From NCBI RefSeq assembly GCF_964204645.1, contig NC_134035.1, positions 13,886,686 to 13,950,685 of the forward strand: DNA of 64,000 nt, read 5' to 3'. Below the pieces are notes generated by a model that had not been told where the DNA came from, did no database searches, and was given only the letters and a program-made list of their open reading frames with translations. This DNA comes from Tubulanus polymorphus (taxonomy: Eukaryota; Animalia; Nemertea). Below are positions 21,744-56,083 of this stretch, piece after piece; within the stretch, counting starts at the first letter, position 1, and the number at the start of each line of letters is the position of its first letter. Position numbers and translations under genes: made by a program.

Positions 21744-24700
21744 ATGCCCGGTGTAAATCTAACTCCGCGTCCGACTCCCAAATTCTATTCACACCAACAA
21801 ACTTTCTCCACAAAAAAGGTAACTTCTTCATTCGACAACAAATCAGGAAATGTCAAATTCATTTTTATTTGAGGTACTTGTTGAACTCTACTAATTGCTT
21901 ATTGAATTATTATTTGACGGGTAAGATTCTATTTTCCAGGATTTCAACAAAATAATTGTGCTCGTTATTAGAAAGAAATTGTATAATTTAATTGCATGCA
22001 GGAAAAGAATACATACAGGAGGCTCTAACTAATTACCAACAGAAACTAGCTGTCATTCCACCCTCACCCTCACCCCCCTCCCCCCACTTGGGTTAACTGA
22101 TATTGTACAATGAATTGTTGTGTTCACACAGGAAAGAGAGCGAGCAGGCGGCGGAACTCCTAGAGATTGTCTACCTCCGAAACCACCCGTGAAGAGTGCG
22201 CCACCTATTAGCCGCATTTATCTACAACGACCGGTATTAAAGGCTCAATTAGTATCATTTTTACCGGAACAACAAACAGGTTTAAATCGTTTAATTTTAA
22301 AAGTGTTGAATTCGATCGTCGAGTGTTTCTTGTTTAAATGTTTCTGTTTCTCATTGTAGGTTGTTTAACTAATTACAATCAACAAAGTGAAGAACTTTAT
22401 TTTGATCAATGTTTTGAAGTTCATTCTAAACTTGGAAGTGGTTCATTCGGAGAAGTAAGTCCTGAAAACAAGTTTTACAGGGCTTAGTGGGTGGCTCCAG
22501 GATGTTCAGGGCGGCTCCATGGTCGAATGCTAAAATTGACTCCAGGCACAGAGGCTTGTTCCAGACAAAGTAGTTTGCTCCAGGCTGTTGGGTTGCTCCA
22601 GTCTATCTAAGGGGTGGCTCCAGTCTCAGAGTGGTTGGCTCCGTACTGATAGTCACATACTGTGTATTGTTGTAGGTGTTTAAAGTCCGCAGTAAAGACG
22701 ATGGTAATTTCTACGCCGTTAAAAGATCACGTGATAAATTCCGCGGTGAATCTGATCGGTACGTCCCGCTTTCATCGTCGCTACGGCAACACGTAACAAT
22801 ACTACACTGCCAAATCTATTAATAATTGTCGATATTTTTAAATTCGGTTTCAGGTGTCGTAAATTGGAGGAAGTCGCGAAACACGAGAAACTGAAAAAGC
22901 ACGAGAATTGTGTGAGATTTTATAAAGCGTGGGAGGAAAGACAACATCTATACATACAGACTGAACTGTGTCAGGCTAGGTAAATATACACTAGTGACAC
23001 CTGGTGTCAGGCTAGGTAAATATACACTACTGACACCTGGTGTCAGGCTAGGTAAATATACACTAGTGACACCTGGTGTCAGGCTAGGTAAATAAACACT
23101 AGTGACACCTGGTGTCAGGCTAGGTAAATATACACTACTGACACCTGGTGTCAGGTCAGGTAAATATACACTACTGACACCTGGTGTCAGGCTAGGTAAA
23201 TATACACTACTGACACCTGGTGTCAGGCTAGGTAAATATACACTAGTGACACCTGGTGTCAGGCTAGGTAAATATACACTACTGACACCTGGTGTCAGGC
23301 TAGGTAAATATACACTAGTGACACCTGGTGTCAGGCTAGGTAAATAAACACTAGTGACACCTGGTGTCAGGCTAGGTTAATATACACTACTGACACCTGG
23401 TGTCAGGCTAGGTAAACATACACTACTGACACCTGGTGTCAGGCTAGGTAAATATACACTAGTGACACCTGGTGTCAGGCTAGGTAAATAAACACTAGTG
23501 ACACCTGGTGTCAGGCTAGGTAAATATACACTACTGACACCTGGTGTCAGGTCAGGTAAATATACACTACTGACACCTGGTGTCAGGCTAGGTAAATATA
23601 CACTACTGACACCTGGTGTCAGGCTAGGTAAATATACACTAGTGACACCTGGTGTCAGGCTAGGTAAATATACACTAGTGACACCTGGTGTCAGGCTAGG
23701 TAAATATACACTACTGACACCTGGTGTCAGGCTAGGTAAATATACACTACTGACACCTGGTGTCAGGCTAGGTAAATATACACTAGTGACACCTGGTGTC
23801 AGGCTAGGTAAATAAACACTAGTGACACCTGGTGTCAGGCTAGGTAAATATACACTACTGACACCTGGTGTCAGGTCAGGTAAATATACACTACTGACAC
23901 CTGGTGTCAGGCTAGGTAAATATACACTACTGACACCTGGTGTCAGGCTAGGTAAATATACACTACTGACACCTGGTGTCAGGCTAGGTAAATATACACT
24001 AGTGACACCTGGTGTCAGGCTAGGTAAATATACACTAGTGACACCTGGTGTCAGGCTAGGTAAATATACACTACTGACACCTGGTGTCAGGCTAGGTAAA
24101 TATACACTAGTGACACCTGGTGTCAGGCTAGGTAAATATACACTAGTGACACCTGGTGTCAGGCTAGGTAAATATACACTACTGACACCTGGTGTCAGGC
24201 TAGGTAAATATACACTACTGACACCTGGTGTCAGGCTAGGTAAATATACACTAGTGACACCTGGTGTCAGGCTAGGTAAATATACACTAGTGACACCTGG
24301 TGTCAGGTCAGGTAAATATACACTACTGACACCTGGTGTCAGGCCAGGTAAATATACACTAGTGGCACCTGGTGTCGGGCTAGGTAATGAATACTGTACT
24401 ACACTTGTGTGTCAGGCCAGATTAATGTCCTACTGCACACTAGTGACACCTGGTGGCTCTTCACCACAGTTGACTGCGGTGTACATCTTTGAGTAGAAAA
24501 ACCACATGATTTGAAATTGGGTAAAATAAATTTGAATATGATTTATGTTACAGTTTAACAGATTATTCCGAGTTACAGCACGACATCAGCGAGAAACTCG
24601 TCTGGAATTATTTAGTAGATTTATTATTAGCCGTTAAACATCTTCACGACCACGACCTGATTCATATGGATATAAAACCTGATAATATATTCATCGGAGA

Positions 24701-35885: not shown

Positions 35886-36442
35886 TAATTTGCGAAGATA
35901 CGGTTCGATGATTGGTTCAATAATCCATCGCGTCATAGCCCGCGAATTTTAAGACTTGGTTAAAAAGATTTGTGTTATAGTCCTTAGATATGTCATTGCA
36001 CAAAATCCTCAGAAGTCAAATAAACTTTACTCCTTTACAAACTTGTGTAAAACTAGAACCAGATTCCAGCAAAAATGAGATGATGCGAAACAGTAATTTT
36101 ATATAAAGAATCATTTATTTACATTTATTTAATACTGTACAAAATTATAACAAGTCACAAATCAATTCACATAGATTTCATTCCATATAAACACCATTTA
36201 TAAACTTCACGTAATTCTTTCTGACTTAAATCTGAAATGAGAACCAGTTACAACAATGAGAACCAGTTACAACAATTCAGTGAACACTTATAAAGTTAAT
36301 TATAATTGAACAAGAAATTCAAAATTATGAAGAAAATAATAAGCAAGTTGACATTTACGACACAAATCTATGAACCATTTGCAAAATGGCTGAGAATTGA
36401 ATCATGTCAAATTCAATAAGTTAATCAAGTGCTATCTACAAA

Positions 36443-36616
36443 GGGATCATTCATTTATTACGTACGCATAAAATGTGTATTTTTCAACCCCCCTCCCCCA
36501 CTGTACTGTAGGCAAAATCGGCCATTTTTTCGTTCCATTTTTATACGCATTACAGTACACAATTGCACTGACCCCCTCCCCCTCCCCTAATGTGTACGTA
36601 ATGGATGAATGACCCG
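36443..36616. mobile_element. Second MITE per macrosatellite unit (GGGRTCATTCATT..TTACGTAC TIR; possibly PIF/Harbinger-like)
   Basis: gggatcattcatttattacgtacgcat ... atgtgtacgtaatggatgaatgaccc. Confidence 0.7.
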
Positions 36617-39600
36617 TAATTGAATTATTGTGAAACACTTATCAATGGAATCAAAGGCGAGGAATGAAAATGAAATGGCGATCTTTTTATTTTGGTAAAA
36701 AACTTTATAAAAACAAATTCTGGCATCGTTTCATTCACCTGTTTATGAATATCGTGTAGTTCTGTGCGTTTAGGTATTTATTAGGTATATACAGACTGCT
36801 GATATTCTGGAATAAATTGTATTTACAAGAAGGCGGCACAATTCAAATCAAACATTTATTGATTGATATGAAAGAAAATTGATGGTAAATCAACCTAGTG
36901 CAATTCCTAAATTAAAACTTTATCTCAATACACTTTTGCAAATATTAGAAAATTATTTTAAATTATATTCCACGAGCTTGGTGGCAGCACCGTACGGTCC
37001 CCTAGCGGAATTTCTGTGAACTAATGTAATACTACGGACTAGATTATTGACTATTTTCAAAAGTAAGATAGGATCTTTGCCACTCCCGAAATTAATATTA
37101 ACGCTTTCCAGCTATAACAGAGGCAGAGTCCTCAAAAATAAGCATTTATATTTCAACTACCCGGCGTGTCAGCCCGCAGTATTACATTAGTTCACAGAAA
37201 TCCCGCTAGGGGACCGTACGGTGCTGCCACCTAATTTGCGAAGATACGGTTCGATGATTGGTTCATTAATCCACGCGTCTTAGCCCGCGAATTTTAAGAC
37301 TTGGTTAAAAGATTTAGTAGTGTTATAGTCCTTAGATATGTCATTGCACAAAATCCTCAGAAGTCAAATAAACTTTACTCCTTTACAAACCTGTCTAAAA
37401 CTAGAATCAGATTCCAGCAAAAATGAGATGATGCGAAACAGTGATTTTATATAAAGAATCATTTATTTACATTTATTTAATACTGTACAAAATTATAACA
37501 CGTCACAAATCAATTCACATAGATTTCATTCCATATAAACACCATTTATAAACTTCACGTAATTCTTTCTGACTTAGATCTGAAATGAGAACCAGTTACA
37601 ACAATGAGAACCAGTTACAAGAATTCAGTGAACACTTATAATTAATTATAATTGAACAAGAAATTCAAAATTATGAAGAAAATAATAAGCAAGTTGACAT
37701 TTACGACACAAATCTATGAACCATTTGCAAAATGGCTGAGAATTGAATCATGTCAAATTAAATAAGTTCAAATTCAATAAGTTAATCAAGTGCTATCTAC
37801 AAGGGATCATTCATTTATTACGTACGCATAAAATTTGTATTTTTCAACCCCCCTCCCCCCTGTACACAAAATCAGCCATTTTTTCGTTCCATTTTTATAC
37901 GCATTACAGTACACAATTGCACTGACCCCCTCCCCTCCCCTAATGTGTACGTAATGAATGAATGACCCGTAATTGAATTATTGTGAAACACTTATCAATG
38001 GAATCAAAGGCGAGGAATGAAAATGAAATGGCGATCTTTTTATTTTGGTAAAAAAATTTTTTAAAAACAAATTCTGGCATCGTTTCATTCACCTGTTTAT
38101 GAATATCGTGTAGTTCTGTGCGTTTAGGTGTTTATTAAATACAGACTGCTGATATTCTGGAATAAATTGTATTTGCATTTACAAGAAGGCGGCACAATTC
38201 AAATCAAACATTTATTGATTGATATGAAAGACAATTGATGGTAAATCAACCTTGTGCAATTCCTAAATTAAAACTTTATCTCAATACACTTTTGCAAATA
38301 TTAGAAAATTATTTTAAATTATATTCCACGAGCTTGGTGGCAGCACCGTACGGTCCCCTAGCGGAATTTCTGTGAACTAATGTAATACTACGGACTAGAT
38401 TATTGACTATTTTCAAAAGTAAGATAGGATCTTTGCCACTCCCGAAATTAATATTAACGCTTTCCAGCTATAACAGAGGCAGGGTCTTCAAAAATAAGCA
38501 TTTATATTTCAACTACCCGGCGTGTCAGCCCGCAGTATTACATTAGTTCACAGAAATCCCGCTAGGGGACCGTACGGTGCTGCCACCTAATTTGCGAAGA
38601 TTCGGTTCGATGATTGGTTCATTAATCCACGCGTCATTGCCCGCGAATTTTAAGACTTGGTTAAAATATTTAGTAGTGTATAGTCCTTAGATACGTCATT
38701 GCACAAAATCCTCAGAAGTCAAATAAACTTTACTCCTTTACAAACTTGTGTAAAACTAGAACCAGATTCCAGCAAAAATGAGATGATGCGAAACAGTGAT
38801 TTTATATAAAGAATCATTTATTTACATTTATTTAATACTGTACAAAATTATAACACGTCACAAATCAATTCACATAGATTTCATTCCATATAAACACCAT
38901 TTATAAACTTCACGTAATTCTTTCTGACTTAGATCTGAAATGAGAACCAGTTACAACAATTCAGTGAACACTTATAAAGTTAATTATAATTGAACAAGAA
39001 ATTCAAAATTATGAAGAAAATAATAAGCAAGTTGACATTTACGACACAAATCTATGAACCATTTGCAAAATGGCTGAGAATTGAATCATGTCAAATTCAA
39101 TAAGTTAATCAAGTGCTATCTACAAGGGATCATTCATTTATTACGTACGCATAAAATTTGTATTTTTCAACCCCCCTCCCCCACTGTACGCAAAATCGGC
39201 CATTTTTTCGTTCCATTTTTATACGCATTACAGTACACAATTGCACTGACCCCCTCCCCCTCCCCTAATGTGTACGTAATGGATGAATGACCCGTAATTG
39301 AATTATTGTGAAACACTTATCAATGGAATCAAAGGCGAGGAATGAAAATGAAATGGCGATCTTTTTATTTTGGTAAAAAACTTTATAAAAACAAATTCTG
39401 GCATCGTTTCATTCACCTGTTTATGAATATCGTGTAGTTCTGTGCGTTTAGGTATTTATTAGGTATATACAGACTGCTGATATTCTGGAATAAATTGTAT
39501 TTACAAGAAGGCGGCACAATTCAAATCAAACATTTATTGATTGATATGAAAGAAAATTGATGGTAAATCAACCTAGTGCAATTCCTAAATTAAAACTTTA

Positions 39601-42600
39601 TCTCAATACACTTTTGCAAATATTAGAAAATTATTTTAAATTATATTCCACGAGCTTGGTGGCAGCACCGTACGGTCCCCTAGCGGAATTTCTGTGAACT
39701 AATGTAATACTACGGACTAGATTATTGACTATTTTCAAAAGTAAGATAGGATCTTTGCCACTCCCGAAATTAATATTAACGCTTTCCAGCTATAACAGAG
39801 GCAGAGTCCTCAAAAATAAGCATTTATATTTCAACTACCCGGCGTGTCAGCCCGCAGTATTACATTAGTTCACAGAAATCCCGCTAGGGGACCGTACGGT
39901 GCTGCCACCTAATTTGCGAAGATACGGTTCGATGATTGGTTCATTAATCCACGCGTCTTAGCCCGCGAATTTTAAGACTTGGTTAAAAGATTTAGTAGTG
40001 TTATAGTCCTTAGATATGTCATTGCACAAAATCCTCAGAAGTCAAATAAACTTTACTCCTTTACAAACCTGTCTAAAACTAGAATCAGATTCCAGCAAAA
40101 ATGAGATGATGCGAAACAGTGATTTTATATAAAGAATCATTTATTTACATTTATTTAATACTGTACAAAATTATAACACGTCACAAATCAATTCACATAG
40201 ATTTCATTCCATATAAACACCATTTATAAACTTCACGTAATTCTTTCTGACTTAGATCTGAAATGAGAACCAGTTACAACAATGAGAACCAGTTACAAGA
40301 ATTCAGTGAACACTTATAATTAATTATAATTGAACAAGAAATTCAAAATTATGAAGAAAATAATAAGCAAGTTGACATTTACGACACAAATCTATGAACC
40401 ATTTGCAAAATGGCTGAGAATTGAATCATGTCAAATTAAATAAGTTCAAATTCAATAAGTTAATCAAGTGCTATCTACAAGGGATCATTCATTTATTACG
40501 TACGCATAAAATTTGTATTTTTCAACCCCCCTCCCCCCTGTACACAAAATCAGCCATTTTTTCGTTCCATTTTTATACGCATTACAGTACACAATTGCAC
40601 TGACCCCCTCCCCTCCCCTAATGTGTACGTAATGAATGAATGACCCGTAATTGAATTATTGTGAAACACTTATCAATGGAATCAAAGGCGAGGAATGAAA
40701 ATGAAATGGCGATCTTTTTATTTTGGTAAAAAAATTTTTTAAAAACAAATTCTGGCATCGTTTCATTCACCTGTTTATGAATATCGTGTAGTTCTGTGCG
40801 TTTAGGTGTTTATTAAATACAGACTGCTGATATTCTGGAATAAATTGTATTTGCATTTACAAGAAGGCGGCACAATTCAAATCAAACATTTATTGATTGA
40901 TATGAAAGACAATTGATGGTAAATCAACCTTGTGCAATTCCTAAATTAAAACTTTATCTCAATACACTTTTGCAAATATTAGAAAATTATTTTAAATTAT
41001 ATTCCACGAGCTTGGTGGCAGCACCGTACGGTCCCCTAGCGGAATTTCTGTGAACTAATGTAATACTACGGACTAGATTATTGACTATTTTCAAAAGTAA
41101 GATAGGATCTTTGCCACTCCCGAAATTAATATTAACGCTTTCCAGCTATAACAGAGGCAGGGTCTTCAAAAATAAGCATTTATATTTCAACTACCCGGCG
41201 TGTCAGCCCGCAGTATTACATTAGTTCACAGAAATCCCGCTAGGGGACCGTACGGTGCTGCCACCTAATTTGCGAAGATTCGGTTCGATGATTGGTTCAT
41301 TAATCCACGCGTCATTGCCCGCGAATTTTAAGACTTGGTTAAAATATTTAGTAGTGTATAGTCCTTAGATACGTCATTGCACAAAATCCTCAGAAGTCAA
41401 ATAAACTTTACTCCTTTACAAACTTGTGTAAAACTAGAACCAGATTCCAGCAAAAATGAGATGATGCGAAACAGTGATTTTATATAAAGAATCATTTATT
41501 TACATTTATTTAATACTGTACAAAATTATAACACGTCACAAATCAATTCACATAGATTTCATTCCATATAAACACCATTTATAAACTTCACGTAATTCTT
41601 TCTGACTTAGATCTGAAATGAGAACCAGTTACAACAATTCAGTGAACACTTATAAAGTTAATTATAATTGAACAAGAAATTCAAAATTATGAAGAAAATA
41701 ATAAGCAAGTTGACATTTACGACACAAATCTATGAACCATTTGCAAAATGGCTGAGAATTGAATCATGTCAAATTCAATAAGTTAATCAAGTGCTATCTA
41801 CAAGGGATCATTCATTTATTACGTACGCATAAAATTTGTATTTTTCAACCCCCCTCCCCCACTGTACGCAAAATCGGCCATTTTTTCGTTCCATTTTTAT
41901 ACGCATTACAGTACACAATTGCACTGACCCCTCCCCCTCCCCTAATGCGTACGTAATGAATGAATGATCCCCAATTGAATTATTGTGAAACACTTATCAA
42001 TGGAATCAAAGGCGAGGAATGAAAATGAAATGGCGATCTTTTTATTTTGGTAAAAAACTTTATAAAAACAAATTCTGGCATCGTTTCATTCACCTGTTTA
42101 TGAATATCGTGTAGTTCTGTGCGTTTAGGTATTTATTAAATACAGACTGCTGATATTCTGGAATAAATTGTATTTACAAGAAGGCGGCACAATTCAAATC
42201 AAACATTTATTGATTGATATGAAAGAAAATTGATGGTAAATCAACCTAGTGCAATTCCTAAATTAAAACTTTATCTCAATACACTTTTACAAATATTAGA
42301 AAATTATTTTAAATTATATTCCACGAGCTTGGTGGCAGCACCGTACGGTCCCCTAGCGGAATTTCTGTGAACTAATGTAATACTACGGACTAGATTATTG
42401 ACTATTTTCAAAAGTAAGATAGGATCTTTGCCACTCCCGAAATTAATATTAACGCTTTCCAGCTATAACAGAGGCAGAGTCCTCAAAAATAAGCATTTAT
42501 ATTTCAACTACCCGGCGTGTCAGCCCGCAGTATTACATTAGTTCACAGAAATCCCGCTAGGGGACCGTACGGTGCTGCCACCTAATTTGCGAAGATTCGG

Positions 42601-43419
42601 TTCGATGATTGGTTCATTAATCCACGCGTCATTGCCCGCGAATTTTAAGACTTGGTTAAAAGATTTAGTAGTGTTTTAGTCCTTAGATATGTCATTGCAC
42701 AAAATCCTCAGAAGTCAAATAGACTTTACTCCTTTACAAACTTGTCTAAAACTAGAACCAGATTCCAGCAAAAATGAGATGATGCGAAACAGTGATTTTA
42801 TACAAAGAATCATTTATTTACATTTATTTAATACTGTACAAAATTATAACACGTCACAAATCAATTCACATAGATTTCATTCCATATAAACACCATTTAT
42901 AAACTTCACGTAATTCTTTCTGACTTAGATCTGAAATGAGAACCAGTTACAACAATGAGAACCAGTTACAACAATTCAGTGAACACTTATAAAGTTAATT
43001 ATAATTGAACAAGAAATTCAAAATTATGAAGAAAATAATAAGCAAGTTGACATTTACGACACAAATCTATGAACCATTTGCAAAATGGCTGAGAATTGAA
43101 TCATGTCAAATTCAATAAGTTAATCAAGTGCTATCTACAAAGGGATCATTCATTTATTACGTACGCATAAAATTTGTATTTTTCAACCCCCCTCCCCCTC
43201 TGTACGCATAATCGGCCATTTTTTCATATACATTCAGCATTACAGTACGCAATTGCTCTGACCCCTCCCCCTCCCCTAATGTGTACATAATGAATGAATG
43301 ACCCCCAATTGAATTATTGTGAAACACTTATCAATGGAATCAAAACCTTGGGGCAAAGTTAACTGCTGCAATTTCTTCATTGTTATTTTCGCGAGCTTTT
43401 GTCACTATGGTAATATTTT

Positions 43420-46398
43420 TAACTATGGTAATTAGGTTTTGAGAACTCACTTTGTAAATTGAGTTTTTCGAGGATTTCGCGAGTTTCCGTTTTACTCTCC
43501 ATATTACTGATCAGATTCACCGGTTTAATCGTCGGCATGGCGATGTCGTAATAGATGTATATTTTACCGGTAAACGTAACGTAAACCAACGCCGGAACAT
43601 TTACTCCTGGATTAACAGCAAAATTACCTGCAATTTAAATATACCATTACATCAAAGATCAGATATTAGGACACTGGGACAGCCCCCGATAAACCCCAGT
43701 CGTTATAACAATGATATGATATACCTGCACAAAATGCTGCTACATTCTCATCAAACAGAAATCTAATAACTTCTTTATTGTAGTTGATGATATAAGTTTG
43801 ACCGTCCCAGGAACATGTGACTACTTCATCTTGACCATCTCCCTACAATAATTCAATCAATATCATCTATAAAATCCACAGTTCTGGACACAGTTCCACA
43901 ATCCAGTTCCACAGATCTGGAAACAGTTCCACAATCCAGTTCCACAGTTCTGGACACAGTTCCACAATCCCGTCCCACAGTTCTGGACACAGTTCCACAG
44001 ATCTGGAAACAGTTCCACAATCCAGTTCCACAGTTCTGGACACAGTTCCACAATCCCGTCCCACAGTTCTGGACACAGTTCCAAAATCCCGTTCCACAGT
44101 TCTGGACACAGTTCCACAATCCCGTCCCACAGTTCTGGACACAGTTCCAAAATCCCGTTCCACAGTTCTGGACACAGTTCCACAATCCAGTTCCACAGAT
44201 CTGGAAACAGTTCCACAATCCCGTTCCACAGTTCTGGACACAGTTCCACAATCCAGTTCCACAGATCTGGAAACAGTTCCACAATCCAGTTCCACAGTTC
44301 TGGACACAGTTCCACAATCCAGTTCCACAGATCTGGAAACAGTTCCACAATCCCGTTCCACAGATCAGTCTGCAGACATTAGATTGATAGCAGCTGATTT
44401 GATACTTACCATAACATCAAGTTTTCCCAGTGAGAAGAATTGTTGTTCTAACTGCATGAACCACTCCACAACTTCATTCTCCAGTAATATCACAGTACCT
44501 ACACAGAAATACAGTAGTATCACAGTACCTACACAGAAATACAGTAATATCACAGTGCCTACACAGAAATACAGTAATATCACAGTAACTACACAGAAAT
44601 ACAGTAATATCACAGTACCTACACAGAAATACAGTAGTATCACAGTACCTACACAGAAATACAGTAATATCACAGTACCTACACAGAAATACAGTAATAT
44701 CACAGTACCTACACAGAAATACAGTAATATCACAGTACCTGCACAGAAATACAGTAATATCACAGTACCTACACAGAAATACAGTAATATCACAGTGCCT
44801 ACACAGAAATACAGTAATATCACAGTACCTACACAGAAATACAGTAATATCACAGTAACTACACAGAAATACAGTAATATCACAGTACCTACACAGAAAT
44901 ACAGTAATATCACAGTACCTACACAGAAATACAGCAATATCACAGTACCTACACAGAAATACAGTAATATCACAGTACCTACACAGAAATACAGTAATAT
45001 CACAGTACCTACACAGAAATACAGTAATATCACAGTACCTACACAGAAATACAGTAATATCACAGTACCTACACAGAAATACAGTAATATCACAGTACCT
45101 ACACAGAAATACAGTAATATCACAGTACCTACACAGAAATACAGTAATATCACAGTACCTACACAGAAATACAGTAATATCACAGTACCTACACAGAAAT
45201 ACAGTAATATCACAGTGCCTACACAGAAATACAGCAATATCACAGTACCTACACAGAAATACAGTAATATCACAGTACCTACACAGAAATACAGCAATAT
45301 CGCAGTACCTACACAGAAATACAGTAATATCACGGTACCTACACAGAAATACAGTAATATCGCAGTACCTACACATAAATACAGTAATATCACAGTACCT
45401 GCACAGAAATACAGTAATATCGCAGTAACTACACAGAAATACAGCAATAGCGCAGTACCTACACAGAAATACAGCAATATCACAGTACCTACACAGAAAT
45501 ATTGAGATTGAGGATTTACCCAATTTCCCCCTGGTGCAGGTTGATGAAACTGCAGTTTAATGCTTACCGTCCAGTGTAGAAAGAGCGCAATGAATCACTG
45601 GTTTACCATCTTTAATTTTACCGGTTTTTAACCCGCCCAGCGCAACCGTGGTTACGTTTGAACTGCGAACGAGAGCCGATCCTAACGGGTAATATACCAC
45701 AGACGGACCTAAATGTTTATCGCTATAGCGACAAAACAAAAACAAACAATCAATATTCTTCATACATCAGACATTTTAATTGGATACTAAAACTAACATT
45801 ACCATGGCGACGCATCAGACGCATCTGACGGTTCAACGCTTCGAATCAACTTCACAAAACTGCCACCAGGCTGCGCTACTAGTAATTCAATATGGCCGTC
45901 TAAATCATGACTGACAGTGATAGACCCAACCTGTCAATATATAATACACATCTGTATACCGGGTTGCACCCAACAGAAATCAGGACTGAAATCTAGAGGA
46001 TCGGGTTTTCAATATAGGAAGATATGCCTCAAGTTGGGACAGGAGATTACAGGAGAACTGGAGAGAAGGGTCAGTTTTTGTAAGGATACTGATTATCTGT
46101 CAATAATCCTGGGACAGGGTCCAGGCTGCTGCTGCTGCTGAGGAGTACAGCGTCCAGTCTGCTGCTGCTGCTGCTGTATCAGTAGCTGCTGCTGCAGCTT
46201 GTTTCAGTAGCTGTTCCTACAGCTGTATCATGAGCTGCTGCTGTAGCTGTATCAGTAGCTGCTGCGGCTGCTGCTGTATCAGTAGCTGCTGCGGCTGCTG
46301 CTGCTGCTGCTGCTGCTGCTGCATCAGTAGCTGCTGCTGTAGCTGTATCAGTAGCTGCTGCTGCTGCATCAGTAGCTGCGGCTGCTGCTGTATCAGTA

Positions 46399-46439
<41 letters not shown>

Positions 46440-48742
46440 ATCAGTAGCTGCTGCTGTAGCTGTATCAGTAGCTGCTGCTGCTGAGGAGTACTGGGTTCAG
46501 GCTGATTATTGATTATATTTACCTGTCCTGCAAGTTGCCATTTTTCTAATTGAACAATAGAACCGGTAACAGTAGAAGCAGACGCAGTTTCGATTCTACT
46601 ATCGGGAGTGAGACCTTCGATCCATCGGAATAAACAAACAACTCGATCAGAATATCCGATAACTAATTCTGTCAAACCATCGCCATCTAGTGAGAAATTA
46701 TAACATAAAATATCAGCGAGACCGTTGTCATCTAGTGAGAAACTATTACGTTAAATATCAGCGAGACCGTTGCCATCTAGTGAGAAACTATTACGTTAAA
46801 TATCAGCGAGACCGTTGCCATCTAGTGAGAAACTATTACATTAAATATCAGCGAGACCGTTGCCATCTAGTGAGAAACTATTACGTTAAATATCAGCGAG
46901 ACCGTTGCCATCTAGTGAGAAACTATTACGTTAAATATCAGCGAGACCGTTGCCATCTAGTGAGAAACTATTACATTAAATATCAGCGAGACCGTTGCCA
47001 TCTAGTGAGAAACTATTACGTTAAATATCAGCGAGACCGTTGCCATCTAGTGAGAAACTATTACATTAAATATCAGCGAGACCGTTGCCATCTAGTGAGA
47101 AACTATAACATTATATATCAGCGAGACCGTTGCCATCTAGTGAGAAACTATAACATTATATATCAGCGAGACCGTTGCCATCTAGTGAGAAACTATTACA
47201 TTAAATATCAGCGAGACCGTTGCCATCTAGTGAGAAACTATTACATTAAATATCAGCGAGACCGTTGCCATCTAGTGAGAAACTATTACATTAAATATTA
47301 GCGAGACCGTTGCCATCTAGTGAGAAACTATTACATTAAATATGAGCGAGACCGTTGCCATCTAGTGAGAAACTATTACATTAAATATCAGCGAGAACGT
47401 TGCCATCTAGTGAGAAACTATAACATTAAATATCAGCGAGACTGTTGCCATCTAGTGAGAAACTATTACATTAAATATCAGCGAGAACGTTGCCATCTAG
47501 TGAGAAACTATAACATTAAATATCAGCGAGACCATTGCCATCTAGCGAGAAAATGTATATCACTAATATCATTGAAATTCGGTGAAATAAACTGACCTAC
47601 TAACCTACATCTTGTAGTAACATCACGCGACTATTCGCTGATAACTGTTGAGTGAACGACGGTTGAATATAGGTGGCGCTGTCATCGATAGAATCATCGT
47701 TTAAATGTTTATCAGACTAGAATGAAAGTGATTTCAGAGCTAATTGTTATCAGTGATATATACTATGATCGTGTAGCTGATTTCAGTTAGTCTGCAGTCC
47801 AGGGAGTCTAAGGGTGAGGTAGTCCAGGGGAGTCTAAGGGTGAGGTAGTCCGGGGGTGGGAGGTAGTGATTTACCTGTTGTGTATTAGTACTAATGTTAC
47901 ATGTATTCACAGTCGGTCCTGGATCAAACTCTTGTTCCTCATTCAGATCAAACACGTGACATTTACCTTCAGCCGTTAAACAGACGATATTATTCTGAAA
48001 TTAATCAATATGAAACTGAGAGACGGTCCCCGCGTAATGGAATACAGATTGTGAGATGGTCCCCCCAGGTGGTACGTACCTTGCCATGATTGAATATATC
48101 ACCGATACTGATACATGTAATCTGTAATCACAATCACAATCACAATCACTGTAAAATCATACACACACAGTACACAATCAGTAATACAATCATTACATGT
48201 AGTTACCATGCCTAAATGTTTGGAATATTTCCAAGGGACTCCTGCACTGGTAGTCAATGGGACTCCCGCACTGGCAGTCAATGGGACTCCTGCACTGGTA
48301 GTCAATGGGACTCCCCCACTACTTGATGTTCCACCTGCAGAAGTCAATGGGACTCCTGTGCCAGTTGATGATGTGTTTTCACTAGAAGTCGATGCTCCAT
48401 CGGAAGTTGCCGGGACTCCACCAGTTGTTGACTGAACTCCAGTAGTCATCGGGACTCCTCCGGCAGTTGATGGGACTCCTGCCGAAGTCGTTGGGACTCC
48501 AGTAGTCCATGTGGCTCCCCCTTTAAAAACCGCTAATTCCCCATCAATATTTCCTATCACTAATTCATTACTCTGAAATAACAATACAGTAATCGTTACT
48601 ATGGATACTGACGCGATCATTGTCTACGGTAACTATGGATACCGACCTGATCATTGTCTACATCTCCGATGACGAGAGCCTCGTTAAATACGTTTCCCGT
48701 AAAATCATATTCTAATTTCTTCACAAATGAAACTGTTCTCAT
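43420..48742 (-). CDS. ITFG2: KICSTOR subunit ITFG2 (integrin-alpha FG-GAP repeat protein 2), multi-exon; 3' end uncertain
   Basis: [162 protein letters not shown]. Confidence 0.93.
43873..44365. repeat. 33-bp minisatellite with CAGTTCCACA core (ITFG2 intron)
   Basis: gttctggacacagttccacaatccagttccaca and variants. Confidence 0.93.
44482..45501. repeat. 30-bp minisatellite (34 copies), minus-strand unit GTACTGTGATATTACTGTATTTCTGTGTAG, spanning an ITFG2 acceptor
   Basis: The exon begins TAG|GTACTGTGATATTACTGGAG (G-T-V-I-L-L-E) at 44498; unit = last 13 intron nt + first 17 exon nt. Confidence 0.97.
46120..46485. repeat. Intronic (CTG/CAG)n-rich repeat
   Basis: Lies downstream of the ITFG2 donor CAG|GTAAAT (~46522). 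Confidence 0.9.
46682..47550. repeat. 45-bp minisatellite (20 copies) spanning an ITFG2 acceptor
   Basis: Minus-strand unit ATGGCAACGGTCTCGCTGATATTTAATGTAATAGTTTCTCACTAG; the real exon starts CTAG|ATGGCGATGGT at 46686. Confidence 0.97.
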
Positions 48743-53682: not shown

Positions 53683-55886
53683 TTACGTGACCATGCCTTC
53701 GTCATCATAGTCACCATTGTTGTGTGGAGGGGAACTAGCACCGAATTCAGACGACTGAAAATAAAACCAAATATTCCGATTTCAACCACCAGGAGTCGCT
53801 AGTAGTAGTAGTGACAAATCCAGCGAATTACTCAAAATTTAAGAGATTTTCTCATAAACCCATTCAATCAAAAAAAAGCAAATTAGAAAAATATTCACTG
53901 AAGCTAAAATGCGTTTAAATACCTGAAACAGAGCCTGTCTGACAGGGGGCGCTGTTTGTCTGACGGGTGATGTCTCTTCCAACAATCGAGGACTTCCTTG
54001 TTGCGCGATAATGGAATAATTCGGCGACGAATCTAACAACGCAGCAGCCGGGTTACCATGGTAACAATCACTAGAGAAACTATTGTTATGCACAGCCGAT
54101 GAGAACGGATTGTTTTGTTTGTCGGGAGTCGACGCGATGAAATCATTCGCTCCGATTCGTGATAACTGTTGAGTTACTCCTAATAATCCATCGGGTTCGA
54201 CCGTTATTATCACCCAAATCACCTCTACAATATATCATCATCATTATTATTATTATTATTATCATAATTCTATTATTATGAATATAAATGATATAATGTT
54301 ATTGATATTCATATACAGTCCACCCCCGATATACCACGGGCCCATATCGGTGCAGAACGATTTTGGCGGTATATCGGGTGTGCTTTTCTATGTATTTATA
54401 TAGAGATGAACATTGAGTAGACCTGGCAGTAGGCGGGGGTGGCGGTAAATGGACGGGCGGTTCATCGGGGGGTTCACTATTCTAAAGCATCATGTATCTA
54501 CAAGTATTGCACCTTGCACACAAAGCACGTGGTCACACAGCGCCTTAGTAATTACAGCCCAAGGCTTGTACTGTGTCCCTCATCTTGTAAAAAAGTATGT
54601 AAACTCCTTTATTGTACAATCATCTTAGATGATATAATGATCAAAATTATATATATATATATATAATTCATAGGTAACTAGGTAACTGTAACAATTACAT
54701 CTAATCTGACCGAGAGGACGGACACTACAAACAGGATGGTTAACACTACAGACCGGTTTGTCGTATATTCTTACCTCCGAAATACTGACCGATAGCCGTA
54801 CTCATTCTCCATTGACCTTGATAAATACCAGGAGTAACCGGACTGGTCATACTGATACAAACATCGACTGTATCTAAAGGTTTAATACTATCTACCATGT
54901 GTTGTGTTTGTGTTCCAAGTAAATCTCCCTGTAGGAATTTCAGTGACACGCCCGGTGGCCATTCTTCATCTCCTGAAATATACTTTTATTTTCAAACGTC
55001 TGATATTTGATGCAGGGATCCAATTCCACGAAATGTGGATTCAGAACTGTGGAACTGGGTCCAGAACTGTGGAACTGGGTCCAGAACTGTGGAACTGGTT
55101 CCAGAACTGTGGAACAGGGTCCAGAACTGTGGAACTGGATCCAGAACTGTGGAGCAGGGTCGAGAACTGTGGAATTGAGTCCAGAACTGTGGAACTGAGT
55201 CCAGAACAGTGTAACAGGGTCCAGTGAATAACTAGGTAACTGTTACTAGGCAACTGTAACTAGGTAACTGTTAGTCTGTGTGACAAGGCGTTGGCGGCGG
55301 ACTCTAACCTGAATTCTGTATCCTCCATGTTTTAGTGAACTGTGTATTTGGAGGCACTGATTCACCCTCCCCGATTGTTATATCGTTGATTAGTCTCATG
55401 TTCGGCAGTTTATCTTGTTTTGGTTGTTCGAAGTCGAAGTAAGCGCAGACAGCAGCTTGTAGGTTCCTGTAAAATCAACAAACATTGCACCAGCTGGCAG
55501 CTTACAAATATAGCTTCAACAGCTTCTGATTTTAACTGAGATAGAACTAAGGCCAAAGCGCTTTACGATCAGTTTGCGATTTTTACAGGACTGGTATGGT
55601 TAAATTAAACCGAAGTTCACTAGAGGTGGCGCTATTTTGTTTAGTAGCTGCCGTAGGCGCAGCCGCAGTCTGTATTTATACGAGTTGATATGAAATTATG
55701 AGTTAAGAATTGGGTAAGAATCTCTTACCAATTATTCATTTCAAGAAAGAAAGCGCAGCTACCAGTTCCCAGCTGATAACCGAGTAGTTTCTGAAACTGT
55801 CCAATCAGAACATCTTTATCAGTGGTTCCCATTCTACTGAACTGCTGTAATAATTGTGAATCGATATCGTTATTATCCACATCCAT
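53683..55886 (-). CDS. ILRUN: ILRUN (C6orf106): UBA-like + NBR1-like FW domain, 5 exons
   Basis: MDVDNNDIDSQLLQQFSRMGTTDKDVLI, CAFFLEMNNWNLQAAVCAYFD, DITIGEGESVPPNTQFTKTWRIQNSG, YQGQWRM, IWVIITVEPDGLLGVTQQL. Confidence 0.95.
54316..54479. mobile_element. Tc1/mariner-type MITE (degenerate)
   Basis: TA|CAGTCCACCCCCGATATACC ... GGTTCATCGGGGGGTTCACTA. Confidence 0.6.
55030..55225. repeat. 20-bp minisatellite (CCAGAACTGTGGAACTGGGT)
   Basis: Same core, reverse-complemented, as the arrays at 7140, 43873 and 60190; same orientation as 20110. Confidence 0.9.
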
Positions 55887-56083
55887 TGTTTGTTTGTTTA
55901 TCAATGTTTTATTGAATTGTTATCGAACGTTTAACACGATTAAAATCAATCACAAACATCAATTCCGTCATCATTACTCCTCTACTACACAACGACATAT
56001 TGATGACGTCATAAGGAGGAGCCGGTTGCCACTAAAAATAGGAGGTAATCCTCACGTCCGGTCCATGAGTCCGATTCCGAATG

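Follow-up and report, generated by a model that had tools for sequence, protein, structure and literature searches.

Intron 8 of the ITFG2 gene in the palaeonemertean ribbon worm Tubulanus polymorphus contains its own 3' splice junction in 34 tandem copies, and the assembled mRNA uses only the last of them, the copy that touches exon 9. We regard this array as very probably a 'mirage' minisatellite, that is, a tandem copy of an intron-exon boundary that leaves splicing undisturbed. The array lies in a stretch of 64,000 nucleotides of contig NC_134035.1, which was analysed as a whole and is called the window below; all coordinates are positions in this window.

The gene was identified on the minus strand, where exon-sized open segments match the Pfam family PF15907 (Itfg2) and the exon directly after the array matches positions 232-260 of that profile. 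When the database was searched with the open frame through the array, a single protein was returned, P0001, which is listed at NCBI as 'KICSTOR complex protein ITFG2-like isoform X1 [Tubulanus polymorphus]' (543 aa) and is encoded exactly by the window in 12 exons, running from 48742 to 42866. The name ITFG2, given to the gene in an initial annotation, is therefore confirmed both by the Pfam matches and by the exact encoding of P0001. Some further observations on the gene and its surroundings can be recorded here. Exon 2 (48207-48572, minus strand) contains an in-frame coding repeat rich in GVP/TTSAG motifs, about 100 residues long and within P0001, and the Pfam Itfg2 match starts at residue 143, directly behind it; the repeat has the look of a low-complexity insertion that is lineage-specific and expressed. 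The last coding exon was found by a protein search against the own genome in six tandem copies (36170-42946, minus strand, spaced by about 1.33 kb), two without a stop and four with TAA, and P0001 takes its last exon from the copy at 42866-42930. A neighbour gene at 54749-55919, also on the minus strand, begins UBA-like and carries an Ig-like domain of the NBR1 type (Pfam PF16158, E 1e-14), as is found in ILRUN/C6orf106-like proteins.

According to the mapping of P0001, the introns of ITFG2 are 74, 85, 85, 158, 918, 592, 80, 1069, 567, 97 and 520 nt long. Each of the four introns of 567-1,069 nt holds a minisatellite. With the arrays collapsed to one unit, these four introns would measure 92, 293, 79 and 111 nt; these collapsed lengths indicate a basal ITFG2 intron of about 75-110 nt, and once the arrays are taken out, the introns of the gene are mostly about 74-111 nt. 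Besides two arrays that lie on splice junctions, purely intronic minisatellites inflate two more ITFG2 introns (43875-44363 and 46161-46483, minus strand, with 33-bp units and 24-bp/CAG-rich units, respectively), and they start 39-46 nt past the donor. In all, minisatellites are found in four of the five long introns of the gene, as two junction arrays and two purely intronic ones.

The array between exons 8 and 9 occupies 44482-45501 on the minus strand. It was reported by TRF as 34.0 copies of a 30-bp unit with 96% matches, no indels and a score of 1886. In each unit, the 13 nt that end the intron, with pyrimidine tract and AG, precede the 17 nt that open exon 9. Since the unit joins an intron end to an exon start, the acceptor is present 34 times and each unit can be read as GT...AG; the units begin with GT because exon 9 begins with GT, and they end with AG because the intron ends with AG. 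In the GT...AG phase, the unit table holds 33 full units from 45488 to 44499. Their starts are GT in 27, TT in three and GC in three, and their ends are TAG in 31 and CAG in two, while all 34 AG acceptors are intact when the one at 45490-45489, ahead of unit 1, is counted. The tandem array of 30-mers with 34 acceptors described in the initial annotation is thus borne out. In the coding phase, formed by one G of exon 8, the array and exon 9, a stretch of 360 codons is free of stops and encodes decapeptide repeats, and the open segment through the array spans 44368-45594; the earlier remark that the array is in frame and stop-free holds as well. However, two of the three frames of the unit are open, and a stop-free frame was accordingly rejected as evidence of coding. 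The openness of the frame is explained by the 17 nt of the 30 that derive from coding sequence, and with two open unit frames the frame would be open anyway. Neither the GT...AG units nor the open frame needs a special cause.

How do the copies differ from each other? There are 22 substitutions against the consensus among the 33 units, concentrated in the first seven and thinner in the last third, and units 11-18 are mutually identical. This is the usual pattern of a homogenised minisatellite with older edges. The substitutions are unequally divided between the two halves of the unit, 3 at 429 positions in the acceptor half and 19 at 561 positions in the exon-derived half (Fisher p 0.004, the events not being independent). 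The lower variation of the acceptor half (unit positions 18-30 versus 1-17) may be due to turnover history, mutation bias or constraint, and it is a point against the mirage account. The array is unique in the 268-Mb assembly. All matches fall at its own locus, and a dispersed repeat family was therefore rejected. Array-unit variants that are missing from the reference were seen in the public runs X1-X3, for example in a 113-nt X2 contig with 8 differences; these contigs are too short to count copies.

The position of the array tells how it arose. Its start lies 66 nt past the donor (GTAAGC, 45567) and its end is 17 nt deep in exon 9, which indicates that a 30-bp segment straddling the junction was duplicated and then expanded. 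The unique 5' part of the intron (45502-45567, minus strand) contains this donor and two CTCAAT branch-like motifs, and the ancestral intron of 79 nt is made up of this part and the 13 nt with which the array begins. The first acceptor AG, at 45489-45490, is the ancestral acceptor, which is why it closes this 79-nt intron. The initial annotation had read this part of the structure correctly, as an ordinary 79-nt intron from the donor at 45567, with CTCAAT occurring twice just upstream of 45490-45489. It had also invoked intron gain by duplication of an AG|GT site, and here the result is different: an existing intron was lengthened, and its donor and first 66 nt are unique sequence. In the model of Rogers, a new intron arises when an AGGT proto-splice site is duplicated in tandem, with cases in Drosophila (PMC2891723), and introns of tandem arrays have been described in human (Zhuo et al. 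2007 PNAS 104:882, as cited in PMC2812944). The ITFG2 array is like that model in that a tandem duplication with AG|GT creates extra potential splice sites, but unlike it in that the used donor at 45567 and the next 66 nt are outside the duplicated sequence.

The scenario that we favour for the mirage is as follows. A 30-bp segment across the 3' splice junction of a 79-nt ITFG2 intron was duplicated in tandem, and ordinary minisatellite turnover expanded the duplicated segment to 34 copies, so that the intron was lengthened from 79 to 1,069 nt. The spliceosome joins exon 8 to the copy touching the real exon 9, and the array leaves as intron. The array itself would be functionless, a filler tolerated in a genome with a high birth rate of minisatellites.

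Which junction is found in the mature RNA? Contigs assembled from public runs were compared on 44364-44798, which covers exon 9 and the last 10 array units. A 767-nt contig of run X3 lies only on 44409-44499, without differences, and its loose ends match exactly 45569-45598, the end of exon 8, and 43812-43841, the start of exon 10. Since both loose ends match the flanking exons, splicing has taken place at either end of the contig, and the array is skipped in full. The joints are 45568 to 44498 and 44410 to 43842, the first of which is also used in the model of P0001. Thus exon 8 (45568-45722, minus strand, 155 nt), which ends in ...ALSTLD plus the first base of a G codon, is followed by exon 9 (44410-44498, minus strand, 89 nt), of which the opening 17 nt (44482-44498) form the exonic half of the 30-bp unit. 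The acceptor used is the last AG, at 44499-44500, as given by both the X3 contig and the mapping of P0001; the first AG is not joined in either. The library type of the X3 sample is not on record, and its content of spliced RNA is shown by the 767-nt contig itself. A retrocopy was considered as the source of this contig and rejected, as the assembly matches all lie exon by exon at the ITFG2 locus. Run X5, guessed to be RNA (2015), gave no contig on 44364-44798. It should be noticed that the RNA basis is one assembled contig from one run, and that assembled contigs drop rare variants. For the major mRNA form the matter is settled: 45568 is joined to 44498, at the last acceptor. The protein resulting from this junction fits its family. 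P0001 gives one continuous match to Pfam Itfg2, with residues 143-493 on profile positions 5-329 (E 1e-103), and its alignment with ITFG2 of Capitella teleta is ungapped at the exon 8/9 junction, through ...LDGT....

Might minor transcripts use the upstream acceptors, so that ITFG2 would gain between 10 and 330 hydrophobic residues? In favour of this, none of the 33 units interrupts the frame, the decoy acceptors do not differ from the one that is used, and words of the array occur in run X3, a run with spliced RNA. What is more, transcripts that include the array would be invisible to nonsense-mediated decay because the array has no stop. Against this, the 767-nt contig is unbroken through the junction, which means that there is no abundant branch at that point, and no joint from 45568 to any of the last 10 decoy acceptors was found in the contigs on 44364-44798. 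Short array-derived contigs do occur in X3 and may stem from pre-mRNA, from traces of DNA or from minor isoforms. Database searches among candidates of 225-716 and 299-950 aa returned no protein with decapeptide repeats; the latter range would cover full inclusion of the 330 extra residues. The insertion would also hit a conserved stretch of the beta-propeller, the one that is ungapped against Pfam and Capitella, and the open frame is uninformative for the reasons of origin and unit frames given above. An in-frame hydrophobic insertion, proposed earlier as one reading of the array, is therefore not upheld as the expressed form, being missing from the X3 contig, from P0001 and from the database proteins of 225-950 aa. 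We consider such a ladder of minor products very unlikely.

Another reading of the same sequence is recursive splicing. Exon 8 might join an upstream acceptor by intron definition, regenerate G|GTACTG, and re-splice stepwise down to the last acceptor. Zero-nucleotide-exon ratchet points have reportedly been described in long introns of Drosophila and vertebrates, by Burnette in 2005 and by Duff and Sibley in 2015. Ratchet points have a strong donor of the GTAAGT type, are conserved, and lie in very long introns. The ITFG2 array is like them in that AG is directly followed by GT, as it is in 27 of the 33 units, and in that a donor-like sequence is regenerated on splicing. The first acceptor retains the ancestral distance and branch-like motifs. 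Because a ratchet route would yield the same final mRNA, the mature junction in the X3 contig is compatible with it. The real donors of ITFG2 are loose too (GTAACT, GTACGT, GTATAT), and three of them score 1.8-2.9 bits, compared with 2.0-2.4 bits for the unit, on a matrix built from the 11 donors of the gene, a small set (leave-one-out median 6.2, range 1.8-11.5 bits).

The ratchet nevertheless appears very unlikely to us. The strong AG|GTRAGT of known ratchet points is replaced here by AG|GTACTG, with its score of 2.0-2.4 bits and without consensus letters at +4 to +6. A device that depends on GT would keep GT, and here it is the most mutated dinucleotide of the unit, taking 6 of the 22 substitutions versus 1.5 expected (binomial p about 0.003, the events not being independent) and being lost in 6 of 33 units, while AG takes none of the 22. 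The host intron is 1,069 nt long, whereas known ratchet points are said to lie in introns of tens of kilobases. In addition, the second acceptor array of the gene, with 45-bp units, has AT starts and allows no re-splicing, yet in the annotated protein it is still the acceptor next to the exon that is used. Finally, no intermediate was seen, in that the contigs contain no joint to the last 10 decoys. The weak donor, the decay of GT, the modest intron length and the sister array with AT starts together leave the zero-length-exon function suggested in the initial annotation unsupported. There is a variant of this idea in which the array acts as a self-correcting stack of acceptors: mistaken joins to a decoy would regenerate a donor and re-splice downstream, and the persistence of the array would be explained thereby. 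We hold this to be decidedly unlikely. If it were true, minisatellites on AG|GT junctions would be tolerated better than others, and a low-level ladder of intermediates spaced by 30 nt would exist.

There is a further question for the mirage account, why is the last acceptor used while so many like it lie upstream? Pyrimidine tract and AG are common to all 34 acceptors, and the sequence upstream is also shared from the second acceptor on. Upstream of acceptors 2-34 lies the exon-derived half of the previous unit, with GTGAT at about -21 and TTAC at about -16. Such GTGAT and TTAC motifs are found in the last 25 nt of ITFG2 introns 1 and 2, which makes them plausible branch sites. The last unit itself was considered as the reason for the choice and rejected, as it departs from the consensus only by a T-to-C change at position 12, which another unit shows too. 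What differs is the sequence further downstream. Past its first 17 nt exon 9 has a purine-rich stretch that is missing after the decoy copies: the 23 nt that follow the shared 17 nt are 70% purine in the real exon 9 versus 43% in a decoy. A strong GTAAGT donor is present 89 nt from the last acceptor, while the decoys run into another pyrimidine tract. We infer that the last copy may win as the only one with a purine-rich exon body and a GTAAGT donor downstream. Choice of the exon-adjacent copy by exon context, or by exon definition, would be the simplest account. There is one point on the other side. The first acceptor keeps the ancestral distance of 79 nt and the branch region, yet the assembled mRNA uses the last. 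In a genome with introns of about 80 nt, intron definition would favour the first acceptor, and this counts against the mirage account. Taken the other way, as the decoys are identical, the first of them is at the ancestral distance and the last acceptor is used, the locus argues that exon context sets the choice of the 3' splice site.

The ITFG2 intron is not the only place in the window where a minisatellite spans a splice junction. TRF gave 56 rows for the window, corresponding to about 30 distinct arrays in 64 kb. The second junction array of ITFG2, 19.4 copies of a 45-bp unit at 46682-47552 on the minus strand, copies the acceptor TTTCTCACTAG together with the exon 6 start ATGGC. Its units start with AT and carry an in-frame TAA, and as they start with AT, re-splicing is impossible there. 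A third array, with 40 copies of a 36-bp unit at 22968-24417 on the plus strand, copies the last 12 nt of a protein-kinase exon plus the donor GTAAAT; its host gene, which has a Pfam Pkinase match, was read as PKMYT1-like, and read-through past the first donor meets TAA at once. Use of the exon-adjacent copy is required at the 45-bp and 36-bp arrays as well.

Is there then a process that seeks junctions, with tandem duplication nucleated at exon-intron boundaries by the splice sites or by RNA? The presence of three junction-spanning arrays in one 64-kb window, the 30-bp and 45-bp arrays of ITFG2 and the 36-bp array of PKMYT1, speaks for it. To estimate the chance level, a seed of 24-45 bp was placed uniformly over the ancestral introns and junctions of ITFG2, and a seed was called tolerated if the mRNA was unchanged. 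Under this model, 26-45% of the tolerated seeds span a junction, and 47-63% when only the short introns are considered, while two of the four intronic arrays of ITFG2 do so and the other two are purely intronic. Put more broadly, if repeats are born at random in introns of about 80 nt, a third to a half of the arrays should span a junction. A junction-seeking process is not needed, and we consider it very unlikely.

The closest known counterparts of the array are the mirages of amphioxus, which are tandem, minisatellite-like duplications of intron-exon boundaries that leave splicing undisturbed (PMC3087553, PMC3902484). They are known in the globin genes BflGb6 and BflGb9 (PMC3087553) and in PGBD5 and troponin C (PMC3902484), and the first one was described in amphioxus Adh3 (Canestro et al. 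2002, NAR 30:2871, as cited in PMC3087553). Amphioxus mirages may involve the 5' or the 3' boundary, many of their copies keep AG/GT, and they undergo concerted evolution inside the array (PMC3087553, PMC3902484). Length polymorphism is a hallmark of the Adh3 mirage. In its anatomy and splicing, the ITFG2 locus agrees with these mirages. Its array is head-to-tail, the unit is partly intronic and partly exonic, the authentic junction is the terminal copy, and regular splicing is undisturbed for the major form, as seen in the X3 contig and the NCBI model. As in amphioxus, the unit spans a boundary, AG/GT is often kept, the interior is homogenised and the edges are diverged. The differences are in the host, a nemertean here and a cephalochordate there, and in the copy number, which is 34 in ITFG2 versus 3-6 in the globin mirages of amphioxus. 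The ITFG2 unit is also short (30 bp) and, unlike those of amphioxus, happens to be in frame and stop-free. A literature search on duplicated splice sites found nothing specific. A more distant comparison is the antifreeze glycoprotein gene of notothenioid fishes, which is said to have been born from trypsinogen (reportedly by Chen, DeVries and Cheng in 1997). There too a long tandem array grew from a short segment across an intron-exon boundary, but that array became coding with a new function, whereas the ITFG2 array stays intronic and is spliced out.

What does the locus mean for the gene and for splicing in this animal? It is a junction repeat of an already described kind, not a new splicing device. 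The long introns of ITFG2 are long because of minisatellites. With 34 acceptors sharing the same pyrimidine tract and AG, the locus serves as a natural experiment, and it argues that, even in an animal with short introns, the 3' splice site is chosen by exon context rather than by its distance from the donor or the order in which sites are transcribed. Since mis-splicing at this array would stay in frame and escape nonsense-mediated decay, it is also a sensitive place to measure the fidelity of splicing.
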